Assembly (NCBI GenBank): GCA_000708835.1 | Contig: DF237191.1 | Coordinates: 62,001 to 126,000 of the forward strand | Source: Klebsormidium nitens | Lineage: Eukaryota; Plantae; Klebsormidiophyceae | Direction: 5' to 3' | Length of the DNA: 64,000 nucleotides | Part shown: one piece after another, positions 45,041 through 62,915 of the stretch | Numbering within the stretch: the stretch's first letter is position 1 | Layout: the number at the start of each line of letters is the position of its first letter | Notes under the pieces: model-generated | The model's database searches: none | What the model was told of the DNA's origin: nothing | Seen by the model: only the letters and a program-made list of their open reading frames with translations | Program-made: the position numbers and the translations under genes

Positions 45041-45814
45041 CAGTGAGCAGCCTAGCTGGATGTGCACCGCCGTAAATTTCGATGCGCTGGTCACAATCAA
45101 AGTCCTTCTACGAAAATTAATTGGCGTGTTCAAGGCCCAAGCTAGTGTACTTAATGTACCCCAACACGTGGTTGAGACGCAGCTGCCAGCACCTTGCAAG
45201 CTTATATCACAATTAATTCACAGCTCGGCAAAGGTACACCGGCGCAGGCGTCCCGGACTTCTCGGCCTTGTCTAATGGTATGTACGTGCACATGCTAGGT
45301 ATGTACTGTGTACACTTGGGACGGCACCCTTAAAGACGAACGAGGCAGGGTGCAAGGCTTGAGCCCCTGGGGCCTGTACGGTAGGCTGTCAGCCACACTG
45401 TAGCTGTGACGGTAAGTTGACGTACACCCCTTGAAATTCAATGCAGCCACATCAAGTGGGCAATTGCGCTTGCATCACAAACTGATCTGGTGCCGCTTGT
45501 TGAACATGTTTTCCAAATTCATCTCTAGAGTCTACAGCATGCAGCTGGCGCAGGCAAAAGAGACGGGGTGCAACGTACTGCTTTCAGACGCGCAATCCAC
45601 TTTCCTCCTTGCAAAGATTTTGAATCGAGTTTGCTGTGACATTGCCAACAATTTTATCCTCTGTTAGCAGTCAAGCCGGCGCAAGCAACGTATAACCTAT
45701 GCGCTTCTTGCTTGAATGAGGAATGAAGTAAATGAAATAGGTAGTAGTAAGTCCTCCGTCCATTGCAGGTGTTGGAAGACACTGTAGCGAGCGCTGATCT
45801 GCTCCGGAGCAACG

Positions 45815-48800
45815 ATGCAGCTCCTCACAGCTATCGATGCGCTCTCTCTCTTCCTCGCCCCTCGGGCGGCGCGCGCGGTGCTCGCAGCGGCAGCAGTGTC
45901 CCTGGCTCTCTCTACCTTCATAACACATTCGCTTAGCGCTGGTGACGTCAGGGCCCTGCCGTCCCTCCAAATGGGCGCCAGACTGGTGACGCAGCTCCTG
46001 GCGCTGCGGCTTGGCCTTGTTCTCTCAACGCTCCTCCACGAGTGGGCCCATTTGGCTGCTGGCGCCGCCATACTCATCACCCGCAAGGCCTTCTGGCTGG
46101 AGAAAAACGCACTTGCAAGGGCCTGGTTCAGCCTGAGCAATGTGCTGGGAAACGTGCCTGTTTCTAGTTGGCTCGCGTGTCTTGTGCCCTTTACCCCCCT
46201 CCCAGAAAGCGTGCAGCCTGTGGTGGTGCTTAGAGGAAAGGGGGCAGCAGAATCTGACAGTCAGTCAGGCCACAAGGGAGGTCATGCTGAGACGGGGTTT
46301 TTAGATGCTCAGGACACGTTCGTTCGCCTTGGGGGGTGGTTTGTCTCCGGAGTATGCTGCGTTTTGATGTGGATGGTTGCGCACAAAGCAGGTGAGAGTG
46401 GGTAGCTGCCACTCAATGCCTCTAAGTCTTGAGTTACTTTTCTGCTTTGCAAGACCTGGCGGTTTTTCCTCCGGCTGCATCCACTGTAAGATGCATCTCA
46501 ATGCTTCATGGAACCAGGCAAAGAGGTGTGTTGAGAAGAAAGTAGTGCTGGCTGGATCTATATTGTCTGAAAGACTTGCTCAACACCTACATCCTGTGTA
46601 TGCAGCTAGAGTGGATGATAGAACCTTTGGTCGGACCCTGATGCTTCAAAAATAAAAGAACAAGCACTTGACTCAGGCCACATAGCTCTTTCAAGGTTGC
46701 AGACGATAATCCAGATGAGTCATCGGTTTATTGCCCCTGTTGAAGTAGTCTCAGCTAGGTCATGCGATGAGAATGGTGTTTTCAAAAGTACTTGTTCTGA
46801 AACTTACAAAGTACGTCAGAGGATCAAAACCCTTAAAACTTGGTATGCTTTGCGTCTTGTCTCCCGCGGGTCTAAACATGTGGCATCGGTTGACTGCGCA
46901 GATGGAAACCTGTGGGGCCTGTTCGTCAGCAATGTGCTAAAGGTAAAGCCACAGAAGTTTCATGCCCAAACTATCTCAACATGCTGAAAAGTTTTGAGCA
47001 AACAATGTGCTCTGACCGCAAGGCTTTAAGCAATGAGTTCTAGCCTGCTTCTTCAATCCCTAATTCTGGCTTCACTCTTTAGTACAATTCTCCGCAACTG
47101 CGATGCTCCGTGCTATTGCTTTCTATAACAAGGCTTCAAAGCAACCCACATGATTTGAAGGAGGAGTCTTAGGGTTTCCACATTCTGGAGTGATAAGCTC
47201 ATCAAGAGTACAAGCAGAGCTGATGTTCACGGACCTGCAGAGGTGAAGTCGCTGCCAGCAAGTCATTGCGTAGGTCTAGAAAAGGGAATCTGAAGGATGT
47301 CTGAGCTTCCAAAGGAGGAATCCAGATGCTTGGCGAAACAGCATCAGAACCGGGAAGTGTTTCCAGATCCACTACTTCTCTATATGTAGGGCTGTTTGTA
47401 CACTTTCGCCGGCGCCTGTGCGAGCGACCTCTACGAAGTCCTGACAGGTAGCGCCACAAAGGGCCACTTCCGCTGCGGTAACTTTGGGCTCATCCTGGTG
47501 AAGAGCGTCCGCGAAGGGTGAGCCTTGGGGCCTCTTCAAAAGTGCTCTTTCATTTTTGCAGCCTCTTATCTCTCTCATTTTGGTTATTACTCTAAAGATA
47601 AGACCTGACTCAGCAAACTGGTGCACTCTAGCGAGATCCCCTTTTGCGGACCTTACTCTCGCTAAAGAAAGGGACCCACATATCAGCCGTTCTTCTGCGA
47701 GGAGAGGCGCGGCCGCTTTCATCAGTCAACTTGCACATGCTAAAGCTGATTCGATCGGAGAGTCAAGCGAAACATATCGGGCTACACGAACTGCCCCATT
47801 GATCATATCCCAGGTTTTCTTTGAACCACACAAGCCATAACGGTTCCCTCAAGCACGACCTACCGTAAACCGTGAACTCCTCCTTATCAAAGAGAACTTT
47901 GATTGGCAGACCTCAATCATTCTCCGAGAATGCAAGCAAAAGCTGCCTTCTCCACTTGCTTTGCAGGGCGAAGCAGTTGGATATCTTTGCGGCACTGTCG
48001 AGCATGTGCGGCATTTCCAGTCAGCGGGGAGGCCAATCGGGCGGGCTCGTGACGTACGTCAAGAAGTCGGACACGTGCACCGTTGGCGTGCGTGCGAGGA
48101 TTGTACCCTCCAAGAGAGTGTCCGTGGCTGACAAGGTGCAGAGAACGACTGATCTAGACGGAAATCGCTTTATATCTGTCACAAAAACCGAAGAAACGAT
48201 TAGACAAGTGAACTGCGTTTTGAGCGGGATTCTTGGCACAAACAAATAAAGGCATTGAGGAATGACAGACTGATAGGTACATTCAAGTTAGCAGCGAATA
48301 ATGAACCACTGAGATTTGCCGCGTACAATTCCTTCGAACTGCGGCAGACTTACACCTGGTCGAGATCCGAAGCGGTCTTTTTGGTTGCTGAAATCCGGAG
48401 AGGCCTTCGTCAGGTTTCTTCCTGAACCACCGCAAGTTCTCCTCCACATCGCAAAAAAGTCATTCCCGCCGTTTGCCAGAATCACTCATATGACGACCAT
48501 GCTCATCTCGACTTCTTCAAACTCGACCAAAACCTACCCCATTAAGACGAGTCTGTCTGAGAGGGGACTGACTCGTGATTACCGCAGACCGTGAGTGAAG
48601 AGATCCCTGTCATTTCCAGAAAACATTCCTCCGGCTAGCTGTGTCAAGGTAAACAATTCCTGTGGCAGCTCCTCTCAACACTCCGGCGCCTCATCTGGTG
48701 GGAGAAGGCCAAGGCGAAGCTCACTGGCCACGTCAGCACCGAAGAAAACCCGGTGCAGATGTTCCTAGGGCACACGCGCTTTGCAACCTCGAGGTACGGA

Positions 48801-51800
48801 CAGAATGAACACCTTTCTCTCGATATCCCATTTTATCAGAATTACGGCCTCGTTGGAAAATGTTGACTTTTGAAGGTCGTCGTCACGGGCAGCATGCAGT
48901 GGACGAAGAGAAGATCCTGAAGTATCCCATTTCGCCTGCCCACTCGATTTGGCCTTTGAAACTTTTGTGTGCCTTTTCTTTGCGCATAGCTCCCGATATT
49001 ACGGCCCGGGTCAGGAACCTTTCAAATGCCCAGAAGTTTATTGGAGTTCTTCAGGTAGGATGCTTGGAAGAACGACGACCTCATGTCACGCTTCCAAGAC
49101 GATCAAAATTCTCACTTAAGCCGACTTGCCTAAAGCTTATAGTATAGTATATAGTTTGCGCCCTGCAACAGCTTATACGTTTCACTTCGAAACCCTGCAC
49201 CTCATTTCCGGGGGGGCCGGCGTAGCACCCACGTCACTGACCGTCAGGCAATAAGGGGATGAACAATTTCGCAGGAGGGTCGGTTCGAAGCTTCTGCTGA
49301 CGTCACTCGTCCGGTGACGGAAAGTTGCATTCAGTCACAATCAAGTCACCCTTGGATCATTCTTCACACATACGCCGACGCCCTCATTCAACCATCCTCT
49401 AACCCAATTCACTGACCCTCCTCTTTCTCCCGCAGCATTCCCAGCCCCAACGAGTCGCACCCGCACCAATGGTCCCCCCCCCTCCCCGTCACGCACTGGC
49501 AGCACCCCCCCTCGGCGCAAGTTCCCACGCCCGCCGCCACCCAATTTAGCCTATTTGTCACCCATAACGGCGACTTTGAGTTTTGGAACCTGTACGGTTC
49601 GGACCGGACCCACAACGAGATGGCGGCGTTTTTGGAAAAGGCCCTGTGCCGGCCGGCGCCGGCGCAGTGTGACAGCGTTGTCGTGGCGGGAGTGGTGGAG
49701 CTGCTGCGGACACAGGGCCTCTGGGGAGCAGCGCTGCGTCTCGCCTTCTTTCAAGTGAGCGCCAGACCGGGTCTCATGTATTCTTTGCTCCACGAATTTG
49801 GTTCTGTATGATTGATCTGTTTGCTTTTTTTGACCTCTTCTGAAAGCCGACGAAAATAGGTCGAGGTGTCGCTTTTGTTACCCAACTTAGAGTTTTCAAG
49901 TTGGTTTCATGAATCCTTGAAGGGCGAAGGCCACTCTTGCGTATGAAGAAGTTAGAATCAGCGATTTCAAAACCTGCGACTGAGCAGAAGCATACCGCCG
50001 CCTAGACGTTCGTCCTTCCAAACTGTGCCGAACCCTGTCGGTTTTATGCTTGAATTGTAGAACACTGTTCTCAAGCAACTTTCCAATTTGGACAGTCCAC
50101 TTCCTGGTTCAGCATTGGCCGCCCCTCTTTCCCACGTCAAAATGGGCCAATCTTTTGGTCTCGCAAGCTCCCTGATCCATTATTTGTGCCTTTGCCTTCA
50201 CGTCACGGTACAAACTCGGACCTGGAACGAGCAGTGTGAGCAAATGTGGCTTCTTTGTACTGATTCTTGCGTACTGTCCGGGTATTACAGACGGTGGTTA
50301 CCAATTTCTCGGACGTCCTCGACAGCAGCAATGCAGGCCTTGTCATCCCGGACGCCGCCGCTCAGAAGGCTATGGCCGCTGTTGCCGATGCCGCTTACAA
50401 GGCCTTTTTAGAAGGGGCCCAGGAAACCACCCCCGACGAAGAGAAGGGCGGGAAAGGGGCGGCCGGCTATGAAGACGGAGAGGGCTTCGCCCGTACGCTA
50501 TGCCAGGAAATGCGCGCAAACGGACCAGGTGAGCCTTCGGTAAACATAGATATGAGGTTCTTTCTGCCCAAAATTGGCGTGCAGACGGCCAAAGTAGGGC
50601 GCCGATTCTCCCATTACTAGCGAACACTCAGAAAACCCCATGAATGTTCTTACATGGCATAAGGATTTTCCTTCAGATTCGTTGCTTTCTTGAAAAGAAG
50701 CTCTTTTTGTCTGGTCGCAGCTCCCTTGAAGGCCCTGCCAGAGGCGCAGCTGCAGGCGCTGTGCAGCCAGGCGGTGGTTAACTTCACCGAGAACGACTTG
50801 TACACCGCCGTCAAGAAGTTCCTCTTCCGAGCCAAGGTGAGAGCCAGCCTCTCAGAACTCTGCTCATAAGAGTCCGACGGGTTCATTCGGGCAGCAGAGC
50901 CGTGCACAAAAGCGCAGAAGGTGAACCTCTGCATAGCACGAATACCGAAACGTCAGAAGTATCTCGCCGAGCGTTGAGGTGAGGAATATAAGGCTGAGCG
51001 GGTGCGAATTGCAGAGGGTTTGGCTCGTAAACAAAAAAGAATCGCAACGACAAAGTCGTCTGCCCGTGTCAGATATAATAGAGGGGACGCTTCAATGTGA
51101 AACCTGGGCCACTGTGGATATGCAGATGCACTCTTGAAGAAGCCCAACATAGCCCGGCCCCATCTCTCGCGTTTGTGATGTGCTCTAAGTCCTGACCATC
51201 AAAGAGACGCTGAATGACGTAATACTGCCTGGTAACACGCACGGAGTCTTTCCGACCTGGCAATCAATGGGCGACTCTAAGGGAAGCCTCGCCTGCTACA
51301 AAGCTGCTTTCGTGCTTCATGAACGTGGTGTCAATTCCGGTGCTGCTCCCTGCAGGGATCCTTTGGGCTGGTCGTCACCACGAGCATTGACACCGATCGC
51401 GTGGCCATGGCTGCGTTGAACCAGACCATGTCTATGGGCTTCTCGAAGGAGTACCGAACAGTCCTCTACAGGTACTCTTGTCCGAGAGTCTGATTGGCTG
51501 GTTACTGCGTTTTGCATTACTCTGGTCATTTGATGCCTAGGTATTTGCCTCAGTCAGCTTCCTCAGAAGATCTCGGGAGCGAGAATGCTTCACTGAGAGC
51601 CTGAAGCCAGATACAATAAAACAGGCGCACAGACTGAACGGCTGATTTGCACACCCTTTGCATGGCCGCCGCCGAGAGCCATTGTGATTAACTTTCACAG
51701 ATCTCTACAAAATCTGGACGTCCGAGAATGTTTTCATCATCCAGCATCACGCTAACAGCTTCCAAAGCCCACGGAATCTGAACCATTCTCTGCTCCCCGG

Positions 51801-54800
51801 ACTCTGACGGCCAATCTTTTCCCAGTTCCGAGGCGTGCGGCCTCAAATCGTTCCTGCAACCCGCGGGGAGTTCGGCCACTGTCTCTGAAGACCAAGTGAC
51901 TCATGTTTTCAACCTCGACGAGGGTGGAGGGGAGGTTCTGGAAGTCGTGCTTTTGGATGAGAATGCCCCCAAGGGAAGCACGGTGACTGGCGCCTTGTTT
52001 CAGGTAAGTACGAGCAAACGCTGTGAGAATTTTCTACAAGATGTGTGGGAAGCCGCATCCCTTGAATCCTTTCTGCGCATTTGGGCTACTGAGAACCGGC
52101 CCCAATAAATGTAAGCGAGCGGTGAGTCTGTCTACGAAGCCAGAGGACTTGCCGCTTGACCATCGAAGTTTTCGTATCTCCAGTCGTTGGACGAGTGGAT
52201 TCTTGGAATTTAGAGTTGCGCCCCTTCGAAACGAAGCAGGATTGCTTGATCATGCGGCGTCGCGGATTTACCGAAGCAGACCTCCGATTGACCGCTCTGG
52301 TGTCCTCGCTTCTCCAGAGAATCGTTCCGCTACGTTGACACTTTGCACTGCGGCGCCGAGATCGGGTTTTGGACTGTCATGAGTACGCTCGTCGCCTTGA
52401 GAAGCTTCGGTGTGGCCGCCATTTCGCCGACGGCAACTACGTAGACATGGGTACTTCAAAAGAGGTACAGAGAAGAGCAGACGGTCCTGGGTGGAAGCCA
52501 CGTGTCACAATGCAAAGATTCCTATCTCAGAGGAGTGCCACGTGTCACCCATGCAGTTGAACGACTCGTTACAGAGCGGCGCAGCCCTGGCCGCACCCGT
52601 GACCGACCAAGCCGCCTTCCTGCACGAAACGACCGGCTTCGACCCCTTTGAAGGCACCGCGGCAGCGGCAGGCGATGCCTACGTCAGCATGAAGGTGTAC
52701 CGGCTCAAGGACCAAGCGACGATGACGCAGGTACGACTTCGTTCGACTGAAACAATCGTCTGTTGCTCGGGAAACTACGACGTGTTTGCTTTCTCCAGAT
52801 TCTAGGGATACAAATTAGACAATTGTCTCGGGTTTAGGCAAATCGAGTAGGGCACAGGTAGCGAAGAAGTGTATCTTAAGTTTAGATGCCTTTGACACCC
52901 ATTCGGCGCTCACTTTCAACCTCCTTTCCCTGCCTCGTGGGAACACGTTCGGTTTACGAGATTCTCAGAGCGAGCGACAATATTACGTTTGAAAACCTTT
53001 GCATCGAAAGGTGCGCAATGTCTCGCGCTCCTAAAATGATCTGACGCTGCTCATGCCCTATGTTCTCGAAACGCTGCCCTATGCTTTCAAAAGACATCCA
53101 AAATGTTCCACTGTAAGCATCCAACTCTGAAGCCTCGGAACACCGATAAATCTGCAAGAAAAGTCTTCAAGAGCAGCATCGCGGCCTCGTGCTTCTGGCA
53201 AGCTATCTGGCAAAGCTGACTCTCTACTTAGCCGTTCGTTTCCCCTGTGTAGGCCGACTTCATCAGCTCTGGGCGCTTCACCGCCGTGAGCGATAACGAG
53301 TACCTGCCGTTCAAGATCCCGCCCCCAGTTAAGGACGTCGTGGGCCAGGACATTGCGGTAAGAATAAGTCTCGGTTTTAGTACTTTTAGTTTTTGCAAAG
53401 TTGCGCTTGAGGAACGAGATGAAAAGGGGAAGGACGCACTTTACTGAAACCCCAGAAATTAACTACCTGCTCCGCACCCTTTCCCACCCATCCCGCGAGC
53501 TGACCCCCCCCGTCCCCCGGACACTGACATTTTTCAGCTTAGCTGTGACATCGGTACTACTGCGGGAAAGAACAGCAGAAGATGGTTCTGCTCATAAGCA
53601 CTCTCGGTTAAGTGCTTTTTATCCGGGGTTTAACCAGGGTCGGCTGGTAGCAAGGCCCCTGGCCCCTGGCCGCTAACTAGATTTAGTAGGAACCAAGCAG
53701 CTTCGTCGCACTGGAGCCTTTCATTTGGCCGTGGAAGATCCACCGTTGCTTTGCGCAGAATTTGGCGTCGCGGAAACTGCTTCCATGCAAACTTCTTTGG
53801 AAGCTCCTGGATCAACTTATTGCGCGTTCTTCAACCGAACTTGAGCTTTGAAGGCTTACAGATCCTTTGAATTGAAGCTCTTTGACCTTTTTTAGCCTTC
53901 CAGCCCAACGGTTCCAAGGAGACTAGCAAAACATGCTTCGATGATTGCAGGGACCATTCTATCGTCGAAAGAGGAGAACTCTCTTGCAAGGACTGTGGTG
54001 TTCGGAAGGAGTACAGGCGCCTCTAATACCCGCCAGCCGCCCGTGCTAATTTCCGCCTCCCTGTCCCATAGGATATCCCCGCCGTCATCTCGGAGATCCG
54101 CGCGCAGTGGGCGGACAAGCTGTCCCTCAACCGGCGCACCGCGGCCGCGTTCTTCGACGCGCTCAAGGGGCGCGTGCTCGAATACCACCGCGAGCACAAG
54201 CGCGAGATGGTGATTGACGTCGTCATCACGGGATGCGAGAGCAGCCTCTGGATCGCGGAGCAGTTTGCGTCCGACCTTATGAACAGTACGTCGGCATATC
54301 CAAGACCGCTCGTCTTGTTCATCTCTTGAGCTGACAGTGGGCTTGGGGCTTCCGGTTGAGACCAGAATCAAGATGCAGTCCGTAGGAAGAAATGCGATGC
54401 CCTCATAAGACCGTGAATAAGATCTCCTTGCCAACAGAAGGAAACAGTTCTTGAATGTCGCTGTTCATGTTTTTCCGACGCTGCGCTCGATATTTGACGG
54501 CCAATCCCGCTCCATTCCGCACGTGCCAATTTCGCATTCCACGGGTATAAGTCCTGCAGAGATTCTCTCTCTTTCAGTCGTCCTGGAATGTACGCTGATG
54601 TACGAGCTTCCAACCTGATTCTGAAGTCGTCCTTGAGAAGGCTTGTCAGAATGGTACTTGTGTCGGAAGGCCTCTATGCTCAGTTAGCCTCCCTGTTCTA
54701 TCTTCATCCCCACCCTGCAATACTGCTACAGCTCCAACTCAAGATATCGTTGGAATCATGTCCTTAACTAACTCATCCAGGTCTTGGCCCACTGATAAAA

Positions 54801-57800
54801 TGAACCTATCCATGGCCCAGTAACTGAAGACGTGCAACCTCGTGCCCCGCAGCGTTCCCCAGCTCTACATCAAGGCCATTTCGTCCAACAAAGCCACCAA
54901 AGCAATACCAGAAAAAGCTGCAAAGGTATCATTATCCGATTTGCATGCAACAAAACCGTCAACTTTTCTGCCCCGCAGTGTTCCCCCAGCTGTACGTTGC
55001 CGCCATATCGTCGAACAAGGTGATCCAGATCCTGGGCAGCAACAAGGGGCGCATCTCCGCGGCCGGCTTCGCGTTCGGCAGCCTGGCGCAGTACCTCGAC
55101 ACCGCCGTCGTGCTCTGCATCTCGCAGTCGGGGCAGACCTTCCCCACCCTGCACGCCACGCGCATCCTCCTCAAGCAGTGCCCGGGGTGAGTCCCCGGTC
55201 GATAGCACAGTCTCTGCGAAAGAAGCTCTCGGCGCTCTGAATTACGGCGAGGTATCTTTTAGCTCGAGCTCTTTACCGCGTGGCTAGGCGTTTAAAGCAG
55301 ATTCTGCACGCCACGCGCATCCTCCCTCAAGCAGTGCCGGGGTAAGCTACCGGTCGATGGCAGCGTTTCTGCCGAAGAAGCTCTTCGCGCTCTGAAAATA
55401 CGTCGAGGTATCTTTTTAGCTCGAACTCTCTATCGCGTGGTCAGGCGCTTCGATTCCGACCCTGCACGCCGCGCGCATCCTCCTCAAGCAGTGCCCGGGG
55501 TAAACCACCGGTCATCATACAGTAGACCTTCATTTTCGAAGCACCCGTTGGCATGTCGAGAAAAACTCCTTATCGTGTTCGCGGGACGGTCGCTTCCAAT
55601 CGCAGACACGAACTTCAGAGCCCTGCAGTACGCGTGTGGAACGTCAAAAACAGAGTTTCTTTTCGACCTGGCGCCTTGTTCTTGTTTCTGAAGATGTAAT
55701 TTCCGATTTACCTTTCAATTTTAGGTCGTTGACTTTCTGGGCAATCATTGAGGCAACCTCATAAGAAATGAAAACTTTTCGGTCGTCTTTCTGAGTTCGT
55801 TTACTGATTAAGGTCCTGAGTCCACGCGCGGCATAACAGATGCACAAACGAAGCGTCATGAAACTTGCGCCTAATCGTTATCGAGTCCTTCTTTCTGCAC
55901 AATACTCTTCCAGATTCAACCCACTGAACCAGTTCTCGGAAACACCAGAGAATAAAGAGCGAACAGGAAAGCAGGGTCTAGCAAACCCATCATCTTTTCC
56001 CATTTCCCCAGGCGCGTGTTCGTGTGCGTGGGCATGATCGACAGCAAGATGAGCGAGGTCGTGGGCCAGAGCAGCACAAAAGGCGCGCCCTTTTGCGCGC
56101 GCATCTTCACCAACTGCGCGGGCTGGCGCGTCGCGGAGCCCGCCAGTGTCTCGTGCGTGGCGACCCATCAGACCCTCACGGAGCTCATGCTCTTCCTGGC
56201 GCGGCAAATGCAGGTAAGCGGCGCAGGAAACTTGTCCAAGCGACGCTTGATCAAGAGGGCGCGCCCCCCCCACCTTGCTCTACGGCGACACAATAACCTG
56301 GACACCTGACAGAGTGTCGCTGCGAGTCTGAAAAAATGGAGCCCCCGCTATCTGATCGCGGGGACAAAGGGTGTTATGGTGCCCTCGGTTGACAAGCGTT
56401 GATGTGCTTCCTTTCGTCAGCGGAACGGTCTCTGGCTTGGGACCGGTTTCTGATCTTAGAATTGCCGCATCATAATGGTGTCCTTTATCTGCGGGTTTCC
56501 TTTGCTTTATTGTCAGATTTTGTCCTGCTTTGAAAATCTTTGAAGATCTTTAAAGTTTCGCAACATGTCAGCCCGCTTATGATACAAACATTCTGGCCTT
56601 GCGGTCACTTTGCCAATGCAAAGCAACTCTGTTAGTTAACAGTCTTCCAGCCTTTCCGTTTGACATCACCGGCCTTCTCAAAGAGCACCCCGTTCTGGTT
56701 CCTGCAAAACCCTGCATAACCCCGCTGGTCATCTTCGCACATTGGATATGGAATCGCATCCGCTGGGCATGCGGATGAGCATCAAAGACGTCATTCTCAC
56801 AAACCTGCAATTCCGTGGTTATCCTCGCCGGTTAGCGTCGGCATCGCAAACCCGCTGGCATGCGGATGAGCTTCAGAACCTTAAAATCCTACAAACCCGG
56901 CATATCCGTGGTTATTTCGCAGGTTAACTTTGGCCTCGCAAATCCGCTGGGCATGCGGCTGAGCATCAAAGACGTGCGGGATGTGGAGGCGGTTAACCAG
57001 GTGTTTGGGGTGGGGGTCGGCGAGCTGACGGGAGAGAACCCGGACGCAACCGTCTATAAGGATCTCATAGCCCAAGGCCGACACGTAAGCGATCCTTTCA
57101 TTTCCTGTTCCGGTTTTCTTTATCTGTTTTGCATTCAACACAACGAATTGAATCCTAGAGATCATTGAGGAGGCTATCTGAATACAGGCAACTGCTACAC
57201 AGAAGCCAGCGCGTGAGCGATTCGCATTTCTGGAGTTCCGACCTTTACGGCCTGGGTTCATACCTCTCATGAAGCTAAGCTCTGCACTCCATAGAACCCA
57301 AATCGCCGCGACCGTTCACAGAGACAATCTACAAGGTCGCGCACATATCCGGTGACTAGAGTCCTGGAAGACAGGCGGACGATCTGGCTCGTTTGACCAT
57401 TTTCAAAGAAAGATCTGGGAGGTCTAAGAGAGTCGCTTTCGCCCACGGATCTGACCCTGTGGTTAGCAACCTTAATTGAATCGTAAAACCCTGTCCGAGT
57501 TGCTTTTGCTCCGGCCGCAGTGGGGGTGGCACATCCTGGAGGGCCCCATCGTGTGGCTCATGTGCGCGGCTTACATCATCGGCACCGTGACGTCACACTT
57601 CCCGCTGTTCCACGACATCTGGCTGCTGCTCCAGCTGGGCTTCGGTAAGGTTCCGTGCGATCGACGCAAGGGCTGATAACCCCAGAGCGTCCTGTGAATC
57701 TCCGATTGAGAAGCTCTGTTTGCAAACATCACATAAGGAAGAAACCCCAATCATTCCGCTCCGTCTAGTGGAGGATATCAGAAATTACTCATGACCGCTC

Positions 57801-60800
57801 TCCGGAGTGATACGATTGTGTAACCCAGATACTCGGGAGTACTTTCCAGACCTTCGAATTGCAAAGGCCAAACCTTGGAGAAGTCTCCAGTTGCAGGTGG
57901 CCTGCCTGAAGGACTATTCCCTCGGCGCCTCAAGATTTGGGCTTCTCAATATCTTCGATAGCTAAGACGCTTGAGTTCCAAGCCTCGTCGTTTGAGTGTT
58001 CCGTCACTCAAGGTTTGGGCTGGGTCGTTGCTTGCGAAGGAGCCCATATTTCGCACTTGATTGGACGAGCCAAGATGGCCCCGTATCTGATGACCACTTT
58101 GTTTTAGGACAGAAACAGAAATATCAGTCGACGCAGGAGACGAGGTCAAAACGCACCTTGTTCCTGAACTTGCAAGATGAGTAATCCAGATTTCAACGGT
58201 CCAAATCTTCCACTCGCAGGCGGCCCCGCGAAGACGACCCTGTTCTGGTGGGCGTCGTTCGTGGACTCGCTGTTCTACCTGTTCCTTCCGCTCATGATGA
58301 CGCTGCTCCTGCGGCTGGTCCAGCGGCGGAAGCTGCTCGCGCGCATCGGGAAGCGCACGCTTGTCATCTGTGACGTACCGTACGTGCACCAGCTGCTCGA
58401 GATCTACGTCTCCAAGCTCGTGAGTCTGTAGCATTTTCTGGCCCGGGTATGCTTTTTGCAACGACTCAAAGCGATGGAACGCTTTGCGTGACAGTCTTCT
58501 AAAGCTTCGTACAGGACTTTCAGGCTGCGCGACGCCCAGCTGATGTGGTACCCTTGTGTGTGCGTCCCTTGTGCGCGTCACCTAATCAGGAGGCGCTGGA
58601 TGATGGGAGAATTGCGGAGGGAAGGGCGAAAAGATCAGCTCTGTATTTGAGAAAAAAGTAGGTGCCCAGAGGCCCCAGGAGGTATCGAACAGCTCGGATG
58701 CGATGTGCGTGAAGATGGACAAATTACAAGCAAGTGGTAAGAGTGGCGGGCTTTGATCAGGAGAGCTACTGGACGTTGGTATGGTGCAGAACTGATCGAG
58801 GAGGTGTAGATACCAGAACGAGAAGGCGAGACGAAAGCTCAACTCAAACGTAAAGGACCGGGAAGCTGATGGGATTCTTAAAACTTGTGCAGTTTGCGCT
58901 GAGCTACTCGATTGCCAGCATAGACGTGCACGGGGCCAACCCCCTGGACCACTTGGTACACCGCTTTACGCACCGGGTCACCAGGTGAGGACGTTTGCGA
59001 GGAATTTTCTGGTACCTGGGTCGCATTAGATTTGGAAGGAATCTGAAAAGCGATTTGGATTTCAATCGAGATCCAAAAAAATCGCACTTGCGAAGACGCG
59101 AGAGATGCATCGACAATCTGATTTGAATTCTCCTTTACCTGCTCTCACATCGAGATACATTCAATCTTGAGGGGCTTTAGAGGCTTAGGGTTTCAGCCTT
59201 TGCAGGGCGGTCGCCTTTAATTTGACTGGACTTTTGTAGATCCTTTGCGCTCGTAAAGAGACCATAGGAGCATGCTTGCCTTTCGGAACTTTTTCCTGTG
59301 CAGTGCTTGGGGAAAAGAGAGATCGAAGCGCAAGCTCAGAAAGGTTTCAAAACCTTCCTTGTAATGTTCTCGACGTCATTCTGTGTCACTTTGCAGAACT
59401 GGATTGACGGAAATGTTTGCTTACTTGCGCAGGGGAGTTCTTCTTGCTGTTGGGAGACCCGACGGTCGCTTCACCACACAGACAAAGAGTGAGCACAGAG
59501 CGATTGTAGTGACTATCTTCGGTTTTTCTGCTTCTTTCCTTTGCCGCCTGCCATTGTTTTCAAATGTTTCGGATCGTCAAGACGTGCGGTACTATCCAAC
59601 GATGTTTGCCGCTTCGATGCACGCGCTTACGTAGAGTGGCGCAGAACGCTGTGGCGTCACCATCTGATGTGAAGCGTCCTATGGAGCATCCGGTCAATCC
59701 GCCCACTTGCAAGCATTTGTCTTAAAACTCAATGCAAAATTCGTTTCCTCATCTTTTCCACGGTTTCAAAAAGAAAGTGTCGGTGGAGATAGAGTCTTTC
59801 TGTTGTCAACAAGTACACACAAACCCCTTGACCACGTTTCCGTCTGCTTTCTTGTAGACGAGGCCTGGGTGCTTATGGCCCTGCTGCAAGCGAAGAGCAT
59901 CGTCAACCTAGGGGTTGGGGCGGAGACGCTGACTGTTGGTACGGCACACAGATCTGTTTGTTGAGAACTTTGATCCGAAACTATTGCCACTTTCTTGTTG
60001 TGGTGCAAAGCACGGTTCTGCCATGTTCGGACGCAGATTCGTGCTACTTCCCTTGCGCAGTGACTCTCAATAGAAGAAAAAAGTGTTCTGACAGCCGATA
60101 AAGAGAGCCGAATATGTCTCACGAGCTTTGCTAGCAGCCTGAGCACTTGCAAGATCCTTGCTCCTGACTCTGTCAGCTGTCAAGTCATTGCATACTTAGC
60201 CGATTCCGCAATCAGATCTCCTATTGCTGATCGCATATCGCTGTCCATCCTTGTATGCAGGCCATAACCTGTACTCCGTCAAGATGATCATGGATAAGCA
60301 CATCACCATCCCGTCTCGTCGCCCAAGGTTCATCTGCGAGGCGATCTTGGGGGATGCCGAGGCAGAGCCGGTAAGCGATGCTTCGAGTAAAAAATCTCAA
60401 GCGGCTTGGAGCCCTTTAAAACGCTTGCAAGAAGATAAACCCCCAGAGTACGCGCTTTTATAAAGCTATGAAAGGTGTCTAATCGCGGATTTGCGCTGGA
60501 AACCACCGAACGAGGGCCGGTTTAAGCGGTCTATCCTCTCCGAAACGTCTGGTCACTGGAGGTGATACGTAGCGCCTTTGCGAAAGAAGAACGATCAATC
60601 AGCGAAGGGTACTCAATCTGCACTATTCTGCTCTGCATCCGAATCGAAGCATTCATCCACCGAGCGCCCGCGAACGTGATCTGAAACGGTCAATGGCGTC
60701 ACTCGAGTGCCCGACCGAAATCTCAAAAGGAAAGCGGGGCTACTAAGATTGAAATGACGGTTAACCTTAGTTAACCACCGGTTCCCCGTCCCAGATGCGC

Positions 60801-62915
60801 CTGTCGGCCCGCCAGCGCGCCATCACCGAAGGACAACACGGCGACGCCTCTTTCTACGACGACATCAACAAGAGCGTCGTGGGGGGTCATCTGCTCGACT
60901 CGGCGCCCGTCAGAAAAGCCCGCCGCCGCATCGTGAGGCCTAGGCCCACGTTTCCTTTTGAACTCTTTGCTGCGTGCGTTTTCTGGAGCGCTACTTGATT
61001 GGGGTCTGCCCATGGAAGCTTCGACTTCGATTCGAGCCGCTGTAGGCCTTGCGTCGCCGCCTTAAACTCAGTCACAAAAGCGACCGCTCCAATTGGGCTG
61101 CGTACTGCTCCTACAACTTGAAACCGGGGTCAACAAAGCAATCAAAGGACCGTAGTTGTTGGCAGCTCACCCGATTCCGCTGATAGGTGGACTGCCGGTC
61201 CGCTTTTCCTCCGTTGCAGCAGCGTCGTTTCCATTACGTATCCAAGTCACCCTGAGCTTTCTCCGTCTCCTGCTGGCTCCTTCTGCAGAAAGCCCAGCTG
61301 AAGCAGAACGCGCTCGCGCACACCCAGAGCGTTCGCCTCACCGGGGAATCCGTTCCGGTCCTCAATTCCGAGGGGCTGCCCGTGGCGGAAGCCCCCGAGG
61401 AGCGGAATCAGCTCCTGAGCACTCTCCCCGCGGAGGTCCAGGCCATCTTCGACTCGCAGGCGCCGCTGGAAGAACTGGTGGACAACCGGTTCCTCTCGCT
61501 GCAGCGCTACATTTCGTTCCTGGTACGTTATGCGTTTCGTATAAGAGCCCAGAAACGAATATCAGTCCTTTGCGGGGTGGGACTAGGAAGGCTGTTCAAA
61601 GACAAGTGCTGCGCAGCTCTTGCGGCGGGGCGAAAATGAACCGTTCACTTTTACGCCTGGCAATCTAGTTGCGAGGGCTGGATGAGAACTCGGCAGACGG
61701 GCCCAGATACAGCCTTTTCGACTCAAATCATTTTCCCTCGCCGAGAATCGTGAAATTTTCTGCGGAACCTTCCATCATTGCCGTTTCTGGTGTCCTGAGC
61801 GTCTTGCCCATACGTCTCCCTCCGGAAGCAACTCTCGGGGACCGACCTTCTCTGTTTGTTCTTCGTATTCTTCATCGCCTATTAAAAGGACGCACTGTTT
61901 GCGGACTCACTCCCTGGCAAAATTCGAACGGGCACCTCCAATAATTCCTCTCCAGTTATGTTCTCTTTACCGTGTGCCCGTTCCCTGTGCACCGTTCTTA
62001 CAGCCAGCGGACCAGCGTCTCTGGTCATTCCTCTCCCCGGGCACCGTTTACGACAGCACCTTTCTCTTCTCCGCTTTTTTCCCGGGCACCAGTCTCTCCG
62101 GTTTGCCGGTAAGTGGTCAGCTGTGTCCTAACCTGGAGATTATTCCTGGGTAAATTCCAGGTGATTTTCCACGAGATGGCCCGCCGAGTGTCCTCCTTTT
62201 GGCCCCTCAACTTCGACATGCACCGCAGCCAGTCCGAGCTCCGGATCGCCACCACCGCAGGTGAGGATCGAGGCGGAATAGCGGAACAGCGGAATGATTG
62301 AACCGCGGGCACGCTATGTACCTTATAAGCACAAGTTGTGGAACACGAAGGGAAAATGATTAACGATTCGCGCTGTGATGTAATAACGTAAGGCTCCGTT
62401 ACCGGTAGAGGTCTGAGTATTCTCCCACGGAAATACCAGCTTGTGTTCGACGGCTTGCAGTGTTTCGAGACTCTTTTTGCGACTCTTGATTTGCAAACGC
62501 TTGATTCTGAGGGCCTCGTCTTGAGATCGTCTCGAGTGAACCTCGGCGTTCCGTTTGCCGGTTCCGTGCAGAGGAAACGGAATGCTCTTTCCTCAACCCC
62601 TGATTTCCTTGGAGTGGTCTAGGATACTGTTGCCCACAGTCGAGAAATCCCGAGCTGAAATTGCTGACGTAAATGGTCCCTTCTTGGTTTGCCCCTGCAG
62701 CCCCGGTTTCCGCGGCGGAACTGGAGCGCGAGTGGGAGGAGAGCCAGGATCCGGCGGAAGACGACGACACCCTGGCCATGTCCTTCAAGTCCGTCAGCGC
62801 ACATCTCATGAGCGTCACGCGCCTCGGCAGCCGTAGCAGCTCGCTACTGCGCGAAATGAAGAAAGTCAAGGAAGAAATGGACGCGGCGGAAGCCGCCGCG
62901 TCCCCCGCCATGTGA
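45815..62915 (+). CDS. ~1473-aa multidomain membrane protein: HExxH (M50-like) domain + class II glutamine amidotransferase + SIS sugar-phosphate-binding domain + TM helices + degenerate second SIS-like region (atypical GlmS/GFAT relative)
   Basis: 26 GT-AG exons in continuous phase (4422 nt): 45815-46391, 46902-46942, 47390-47517, 47967-48135, 48669-48793, 49436-49754, 50291-50528, 50721-50836, 51356-51471, 51826-52003, 52557-52730, 53253-53357, 54072-54285, 54979-55186, 56012-56213, 56923-57084, 57521-57644, 58220-58419, 58893-58984, 59433-59488, 59858-59938, 60261-60370, 60795-60932, 61289-61522, 62161-62260, 62701-62915. Motifs LLHEWAHL, CGNFGLI, QRGGQSGG, GHTRFATS, ESHPHQW, VTHNGDF, CDSVVVAG, GSFGL, ITGCESSLW and ISQSGQTFPT. 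Confidence 0.88.
54843..54892 (+). repeat. Degenerate duplicate of the exon-14 acceptor and 5' end, 126 bp upstream of the real exon
   Basis: TGCCCCGCAG-CGTTCCCCAGCTCTACATCAAGGCCATTTCGTCCAACAA versus TGCCCCGCAG-TGTTCCCCCAGCTGTACGTTGCCGCCATATCGTCGAACAA at 54969. The copy is one C short, which shifts the frame. Confidence 0.8.
55149..55512 (+). repeat. Tandem array (~156-bp unit, about 2.3 copies) spanning the exon-14 donor
   Basis: CTGCACGCC.CGCGCATCCTCC..AAGCAGTGCC.GGGGT starts at 55149, 55304 and 55462, each followed by a GT donor-like site. Confidence 0.88.
56665..56980 (+). repeat. Tandem array (~91-bp unit, 3 to 3.5 copies) spanning the exon-16 acceptor
   Basis: TCGCA..CCGCTGG(G)CATGCGG.TGAGC starts at 56754, 56844 and 56936. 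Only the last copy follows an intact AG acceptor. Confidence 0.85.

Follow-up and report, generated by a model that had tools for sequence, protein, structure and literature searches.

The 64,000 nucleotides of Klebsormidium nitens DNA analyzed here (assembly GCA_000708835.1, contig DF237191.1, positions 62,001 to 126,000 of the forward strand; hereafter the window) hold a gene whose product places a hydrophobic domain with an HExxH motif in front of Cys235, the catalytic cysteine of a predicted glutaminase. The gene model was assembled by hand in this intron-rich window and checked by script (Table 1). The rebuilt protein runs from an M50-like domain through the glutaminase and a SIS-like region with two more hydrophobic helices (residues 1029–1047 and 1078–1096, both in the C-terminal half) to a conserved C-terminal tail. 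A phmmer search of 1.8 billion representative proteins with exon 1 as the query returned GAQ85582.1 of Klebsormidium nitens (1418 residues, annotated as "putative type II Glutamine amidotransferase") as a 100% match to residues 1–192; the N terminus of that entry is identical to the N terminus of the rebuilt model.

Gene model and transcripts

The joining of the first exons is well documented in public sequence. Seven public runs, assumed by guess to be RNA, carry 25–33% of the sampled words from a 6-kb stretch that is ~30% exonic. RNA-like contigs from four runs of four studies join exons 1–2, 2–3, 3–4, 4–5, 5–6, 6–7, and 7–8 at the predicted GT..AG sites, and because these contigs lack the introns they cannot be derived from this genomic DNA. 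A single contig passes through exons 1, 2, and 3 (45978–46387, 46898–46940, and 47388–47518), and a second spans exon 1 to exon 7. The three-exon splice proposed in a first-pass annotation of this DNA therefore stands, with GT-AG borders, an open frame, and contigs that join exactly there, and exons 1–3 lie on one transcript rather than on separate ones.

The start of the protein is constrained as well. An in-frame TAG (45785–45787) lies in the same exon, 28 nt upstream of the ATG at 45815, so the open reading frame (ORF) starts no further upstream. Translation from a site just before Cys235, which the first-pass annotation had considered as an alternative, is excluded: the model has no Met between residue 187 and Cys235, and so none before Cys235 in exon 3. 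The 234-residue extension is a real, transcribed, and conserved part of the protein.

Table 1. Positions of the gene and its features in the window
Feature	Position	Strand	Residues	Remarks
Whole coding region	45815..62915	+		26 exons, all GT-AG; one open frame; 1473 residues in rebuilt model
Intron of the 5' untranslated region	45411..45767	+		Joint 45410>45768, GT..AG, in one RNA-like contig; coding exon begins near 45768
Exon 1	45815..46391	+	1–192	N-terminal hydrophobic helix, HExxH helix, loop, G-x-x-x-S helix; junction 46391/46902 in contigs of four studies
Exon 2	46902..46942	+	193–206	Splice model and contigs
Exon 3	47390..47517	+	207–249	End of third core helix, linker, start of glutaminase; splice model and contigs
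HEWAH (H75, E76, H79)	46037..46051	+	75–79	Presumed zinc-binding and catalytic motif; in helix 50–89
Short predicted beta-strand	46220..46228	+	V136–V138	Loop after HExxH helix; AlphaFold2 N-domain model
VRLGGWFVS	46322..46348	+	170–178	R-x-x-G-x-x-x-S motif, second core helix; aligned to GP..N helix of RseP
D219	47426..47428	+	219	Presumed third zinc ligand; C-terminal end of helix 196–220
R234–C235 bond	47471..47476	+	234–235	Cut needed for free amino group of the N-terminal nucleophile cysteine; C235 of CGNFG at 47474–47476
Class II glutaminase domain	47474..53357	+	235 to ~762	Predicted from Foldseek and conserved residues; exons 3–12; long insertions

N-terminal core and glutaminase domain

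The N-terminal domain is predicted to form a minimal three-helix core, in which helix 1 carries HExxH, helix 2 carries G-x-x-x-S, and an Asp ligand ends helix 3; this core lies 16 residues upstream of Cys235. The positions that the first-pass annotation gave for HEWAH, VRLGGWFVS, Asp219, and CGNFG all hold. Its placement of LLHEWAHL in a transmembrane-like segment agrees with an AlphaFold2 (AF2) model of residues 1–780, in which HEWAH falls in helix 50–89 (predicted local distance difference test score, pLDDT, of 87–96), and with the invariance of both histidines in the homologs considered next.

Beyond GAQ85582.1, the exon-1 search returned six further matches (P0002–P0007), which are fragments of other organisms, 33–47% identical, one of them from the cryptophyte Hemiselmis. 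Each is a single ORF that contains HE(W/Y)(A/S)H, then (S/T)D, then an aromatic residue or Leu followed by CGNFG. With residues 235–1250 as the query, 456 proteins were matched. The family ranges over green, red, cryptophyte, haptophyte, dinoflagellate, and euglenid algae and some bacteria; its green algal members include Chlamydomonas, Volvox, Gonium, Trebouxia, Closterium, Cymbomonas, and Pycnococcus, and its other algal members include Guillardia, Symbiodinium/Effrenium, Prymnesium, Pavlova, Porphyridium, and Euglena. Some clusters at 90% identity contain hundreds of metagenome sequences. Among the 104 listed proteins with CGNxG, 71 have HExxH 80–230 residues upstream, and most of the others are cut short N-terminally.

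Seventy-eight homologs, 17–34% identical over the N-domain region, were aligned. His75, His79, Asp219, Cys235, Gly236, Asn237, and Gly239 are invariant (78/78), and Gly174 is present in 75 of the 78. All 67 sequences of the HExxH type, which are mostly algal, retain Glu76 (67/78 overall), and all 67 have Ser178. The spacing from the Asp to the Cys peaks sharply at 14 residues (29/78) and is never shorter than 12. The second residue before the cysteine (P2) is Phe or Leu in 67 of 78 sequences, and the residue adjoining it (P1) is variable. Such invariance excludes a chance motif. The first-pass annotation had let its proposal hang on whether HExxH is conserved; the alignment indicates that HExxH is co-conserved with the internal CGNFG and that the fusion is kept in K. 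nitens and at least 77 relatives in algae and bacteria.

The likeness to M50/site-2 proteases (S2Ps) that the first-pass annotation had noted in this region is borne out by a sequence profile, by Pfam matches of family members, and by the predicted fold. Against PDB sequences, the N-domain profile found Aquifex RseP (9j82, E = 1.7e-4), Kangiella RseP (1.9e-3), E. coli RseP (3.7e-3), and MjS2P (0.08), the RseP structures 7w6y and 7w6x being among the matches. The alignment to RseP covers the HExxH helix and the "GP..N" helix and makes VRLGGWFVS the counterpart of the M50 "AGPxxN" motif. When members were scanned singly and matches counted at E up to 1, Peptidase_M50 was hit by 21 of 78 (best E = 3.3e-6), Peptidase_M50B by 11, and DUF3267 by 2. 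An AF2 model of residues 30–243 (pLDDT 86, predicted template modeling score, pTM, 0.83) was compared with 48,161 PDB representatives by VIA-align, which placed RseP 7w6z first (Z 7.2, 133 residues aligned), SpoIVFB 8vjl second (Z 6.9), RseP 9j83 fourth (Z 6.4), and MjS2P 3b4r ninth (Z 5.8). The top ranks thus concentrate on the same family that the sequence profile found, and the nearest ESM Atlas clusters to the model are M50 families (template modeling, TM, scores of 0.51 and 0.59). Taken together, profile and model indicate that the N-domain is related to M50/site-2 metalloproteases.

Details of the model point the same way. Over the SpoIVFB alignment range (model 23–198 against chain 22–145), Asp219 is level with Asp137, and His75 lies within two residues of His43; both SpoIVFB residues are zinc ligands (PMC11486902). 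Asp219, which the first-pass annotation had put forward as a third zinc ligand, thereby gains support from the model as well as from its invariance, and we presume that His75, His79, and Asp219 form a metal site. The conserved S2P core layout has been described along with its strand-addition mechanism for substrate (PMC11864173). The predicted layout of the K. nitens protein fits it: HExxH sits toward the cytosolic end of helix 1, a loop on the cytosolic side leads to helix 2, and a short turn connects this to helix 3, which terminates in the Asp. The loop strand Val136–Val138 is a candidate counterpart of the membrane-reentrant edge strand of S2Ps. Stand-alone relatives of the N-domain were not found, within the limits set by word and length filters: a search with the GAQ85582.1 N-domain gave only Closterium, and a profile search gave one fragment (P0128).

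These results also decide whether the arrangement could be an artefact, with N-terminal exons taken from another transcript or an HExxH arising by chance in a hydrophobic leader or targeting peptide. In favor of an artefact, Pfam is empty for the K. nitens protein itself, whether single exons or the whole protein are scanned (no family matched, PF02163 included); whole-length scans of P0002–P0007 were empty too. The splice junctions in contigs of four studies, the upstream in-frame stop, the six distant homologs with the same layout in single ORFs, the motifs invariant in 78 sequences, and the profile and fold matches to M50 stand on the other side. We consider an artefact hardly credible and already refuted by the contigs, the homologs, and the motif invariance.

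Downstream of the N-domain, the AF2 model of residues 1–780 (pLDDT 83, pTM 0.70) matched the GlmS glutaminase domain 1xff in Foldseek (target-normalized TM score, TMt, 0.69; E = 6e-7; probability 1.0), followed by GFAT1 and PurF. Arg269, Asp393, and Asp426 are invariant in 79 sequences, Asn391-Gly392 is kept in at least 90%, and His340, Arg342, Thr345, and His355 are likewise invariant in the family alignment. Sequence models recognize the domain poorly: across the whole K. nitens protein no Pfam GATase model matched at E up to 1, no member scanned whole had a Pfam match over the amidotransferase region, and the GlmS model TIGR01135 reached 25.6 bits against a cut-off of 418. The SIS identity of the C-terminal half is marginal only, with PF01380 at E = 0.0047, below cut-off, in member P0050, and SIS proteins at E = 0.25 in the profile search of the later region against PDB. 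From these matches and the predicted fold, the protein appears to be a distant, membrane-bound, GlmS-like class II amidotransferase.

Additional domains occur in some members. Some (among P0062, P0116, and P0040) add C-terminal EF-hand pairs or ACT domains, and one has three cyclic nucleotide monophosphate (cNMP)–binding domains near its N terminus; none of the three N-terminal glutaminase motifs scanned for was found in it.

Possible routes to a free Cys235

Catalysis by class II amidotransferases depends on the free α-amino group of Cys1. In the primary product considered here the catalytic cysteine is residue 235, not position 1, and no Met stands just before it. A precursor with Cys235 buried in the chain should therefore be inactive, and the glutaminase is probably made inactive and activated by cutting before Cys235. 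Such proteolysis-gated activation, already suggested in the first-pass annotation, remains something that we infer.

Natural variants of the family bear on how the cut could be made. One type, HGxGH, comprises 11 proteins of 1199–1590 residues with H-G-(L/F)-G-H. Three further proteins begin Met-Cys-Gly-Asn-Phe-Gly and have no N-domain. In a FastTree phylogeny of the core region these Met-Cys forms are nested within the HGxGH clade with support of 1.0, so the N-domain was lost secondarily and the rest of the protein was kept. With the Cys at the N terminus, the rest of the protein therefore functions in the absence of the N-domain, and sequence comparison indicates that the N-domain is dispensable where Met removal exposes the Cys.

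At least one HGxGH protein lies on a prokaryote-like contig, after three two-component signaling genes. The Met-Cys and HGxGH bacterial homologs (L001, 1–9030; L002, 1382–11738) stand directly after the same three genes, which encode a Tll0287-like/HisKA/HATPase/receiver hybrid kinase, a HisKA-receiver-ParA-like protein, and a receiver-HisKA-receiver protein; these shared neighbors hint at a signaling role. A split form, with a separate N-domain gene upstream, was considered for the Met-Cys loci and rejected, because the preceding gene encodes a response-regulator/HisKA protein and stops 5 nt short of the Met-Cys start. A second, 1009-residue ORF in L002 was likewise rejected as a Met-Cys paralog because its translation begins differently.

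We tentatively favor, over the other readings, a membrane-bound GlmS-like class II amidotransferase that is made as a zymogen and cut before Cys235 by the fused M50 site. While the bond before Cys235 is intact, the glutaminase would be inactive. Residues P3–P1 would attach to the loop strand Val136–Val138 by strand addition, beside the His75/His79/Asp219 metal site, and the fused M50 site would cut its own linker, in cis or between subunits. Both parts may remain membrane-bound after the cut, since the C-terminal half contributes hydrophobic helices of its own.

This mechanism is favored because of the invariance of Glu76, the constrained spacing, the strand pairing, and the precedent of SpoIVFB. 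Glu76 is invariant in the HExxH-type sequences though it is no metal ligand, which argues for retained catalysis. The hydrophobic P2 residue and the tight Asp-to-Cys spacing also count in favor of a cut in cis by the M50 site. The AF2 model of the N-domain has only two strands, residues 136–138 and 232–234 (P3–P1), so these two must pair with each other, and strand addition is the substrate-binding mode of S2Ps (PMC11864173; PMC11486902).

Several observations weigh against a cut by the fused site. The docked strand in the short AF2 model has a pLDDT of only ~72, and in the long model the linker (residues 226–233) is disordered (pLDDT <50) and undocked. The VIA-align Z scores are all below 8, a moderate range that for helical bundles is not decisive alone, and Foldseek found no PDB match to the N-domain model below E = 0.5. 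In the alignment, two features of canonical S2Ps, the N-x-x-P-x-x-x-x-D-G motif and the Asn clamp, are missing from the algal clade; K. nitens has G-A-C-A-S-D-L around Asp219, and no Asn or Pro is conserved there in the algal clade. We know of no precedent for cleavage in cis by an S2P. The 11 sequences of the HGxGH clade keep both histidines, the Asp, and the Cys and have Gly for the catalytic Glu, so Cys exposure by canonical M50 catalysis is not available there. Finally, class II amidotransferases are reported to self-cleave short propeptides (MEROPS C44; PMC9140057), and a second protease is therefore not needed in principle.

The HGxGH clade has further features of its own. An invariant Glu occurs in a loop motif, N-x-L-E-(N/H)-R, where the algal sequences have Gly; Asn stands at the Ser178 position in 11/11, and another invariant Asn lies 10 residues before the Asp. 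As a coupled swap, the algae have Glu76, Gly112 (where the loop is present), and Ser178, and the HGxGH clade has Gly76, Glu112, Asn178, and Asn209, each in 11/11. From these sequences, the catalytic Glu could have moved to the loop. A fuller proposal, to which we give somewhat less weight, is that an S2P core fused to its own substrate would cut 14–16 residues after its Asp ligand, freeing the Ntn (N-terminal nucleophile) Cys and turning the amidotransferase on. It would be a cis-acting, possibly signal-gated zymogen switch widespread in algae, with the bacterial catalytic Glu shifted from HExxH to the loop N-x-L-E-N/H-R.

The close rival to a cut in cis by the M50 site is Ntn autoproteolysis, in which the thiol of Cys235 attacks the preceding bond by an N-to-S acyl shift, a reaction shared with PurF-type propeptides and other Ntn hydrolases. 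In that event the M50-like domain would not be the cutter and may be a membrane-anchoring or regulatory pro-domain, perhaps one that binds metal and either retains the linker or lets it go. The HGxGH clade, in which the catalytic Glu is absent but the Cys and the metal ligands persist, is consistent with self-cleavage, as are the later loss of the N-domain from within that clade, the disordered linker of the long model, and the self-cleaved propeptides of MEROPS C44 cited above. It would leave unexplained, however, why Glu76 is kept in 67/67 HExxH-type sequences and both histidines and the Asp in 78/78, and why the distance from Asp to Cys is constrained; moreover, known self-cleaved propeptides have a few residues, compared with a membrane domain of 100–230 residues here. 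On balance we judge self-cleavage somewhat unlikely, close as it comes.

It is also conceivable, and to us improbable, that no cut occurs at Cys235. In that case the protein would be a true S2P acting on other substrates, and the GlmS-like part would serve as a cytosolic sensor or regulator that binds glutamine or a sugar phosphate without a free Cys amino group. It is a standard arrangement in S2Ps for a cytosolic regulatory domain to come after the M50 core, as does the CBS domain of SpoIVFB (PMC11486902; compare the PDZ domains of RseP), the bacterial homologs follow three two-component signaling genes directly, and the EF-hand, ACT, and cNMP-binding domains of some members suggest signaling. 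However, none of the glutaminase catalytic residues varies, the distance from Asp to Cys is constrained, and the Met-Cys forms keep the whole 1000-residue remainder without an M50 domain, so this part must function in its own right.

Both parts of the protein are of known kinds, and their fusion at the catalytic residue is apparently new; literature searches, peptide motifs included, found no paper on an M50–glutaminase architecture or on the family, in line with the first-pass statement that no characterized protein has this arrangement. Site-2 proteases are known to act in trans on other proteins once a first cut or a gating step has occurred, and Ntn amidotransferases are known to expose Cys1 by Met removal or by self-cleavage of a few residues. 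An S2P core directly before an Ntn cysteine would link both mechanisms and, if true, provide a new gate for nitrogen transfer at the membrane. The natural variants (HExxH, HGxGH, and a Met-Cys start without the N-domain) are built-in controls for this hypothesis.

Other features of the locus and comparison with known systems

The 3' end of the deposited protein is probably mis-modeled. GAQ85582.1 reads past exon 24 into a 49-residue tail (window 61523–62915) that has no match among 127 other proteins compared; the tail encoded by the rebuilt exons 25 and 26 (62161–62260 and 62701–62915) matches 109 of these 127, with up to 72% identity. Introns 14 and 15 (55108–55513 and 56758–56975) contain degenerate tandem copies of the adjoining exon–intron borders. 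The end of exon 14 with its donor is repeated ~155 and ~313 nt downstream at 76–84% identity, two copies of the exon 16 start lie upstream of it (71–97% identity), and a pseudo-copy of the exon 14 start lies near 54857–54925.

In all four runs, one contig matches the window only over ~49695–50824 (exons 6–8) and then continues into related but different sequence, which suggests an expressed paralog or gene conversion between paralogs. Short contigs inside introns 1 and 4 (46395–46703 and 48404–48633) are probably unspliced pre-mRNA. Retention of intron 1 would bring in a stop (TAG, 46403–46405) and leave a 196-residue product that lacks the third core helix.

Compared with site-2 proteases of the M50 family (RseP, SpoIVFB, and MjS2P; PF02163; M50B-like PF13398), the N-domain has the same three-helix core with HExxH, Gly-x-x-x-Ser/Asn, and an Asp at the cytosolic end, the same inferred topology, and a short strand after helix 1. 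SpoIVFB also activates a protein by taking off its N-terminal pro-sequence. The K. nitens family differs in having no PDZ or CBS domains, being only the core (~100 residues in the shortest members), in lacking N-x-x-P-x-x-x-x-D-G in its algal clade, in being fused to its presumed substrate, and in having one clade with HGxGH.

With the class II (PurF-type) amidotransferases that carry propeptides (MEROPS C44: PurF/PPAT; glutamate synthase), the family shares the glutaminase fold, the Arg, Asn-Gly, and Asp residues, and a catalytic Cys placed behind a pro-region that would have to be removed. Known class II propeptides span just a few residues (11 in B. subtilis PurF), whereas the pro-region here has 234 residues (~100–380 in relatives), is predicted to be membrane-embedded, and has invariant metalloprotease motifs. 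GlmS and GFAT provide the best structural match to the glutaminase domain (1xff, GFAT1), followed by weak GlmS/SIS signals in the same domain order. In contrast to these enzymes, the K. nitens family falls far below the TIGR01135 cut-off and has long insertions, two hydrophobic helices in the C-terminal half, and an extra conserved C-terminal region.

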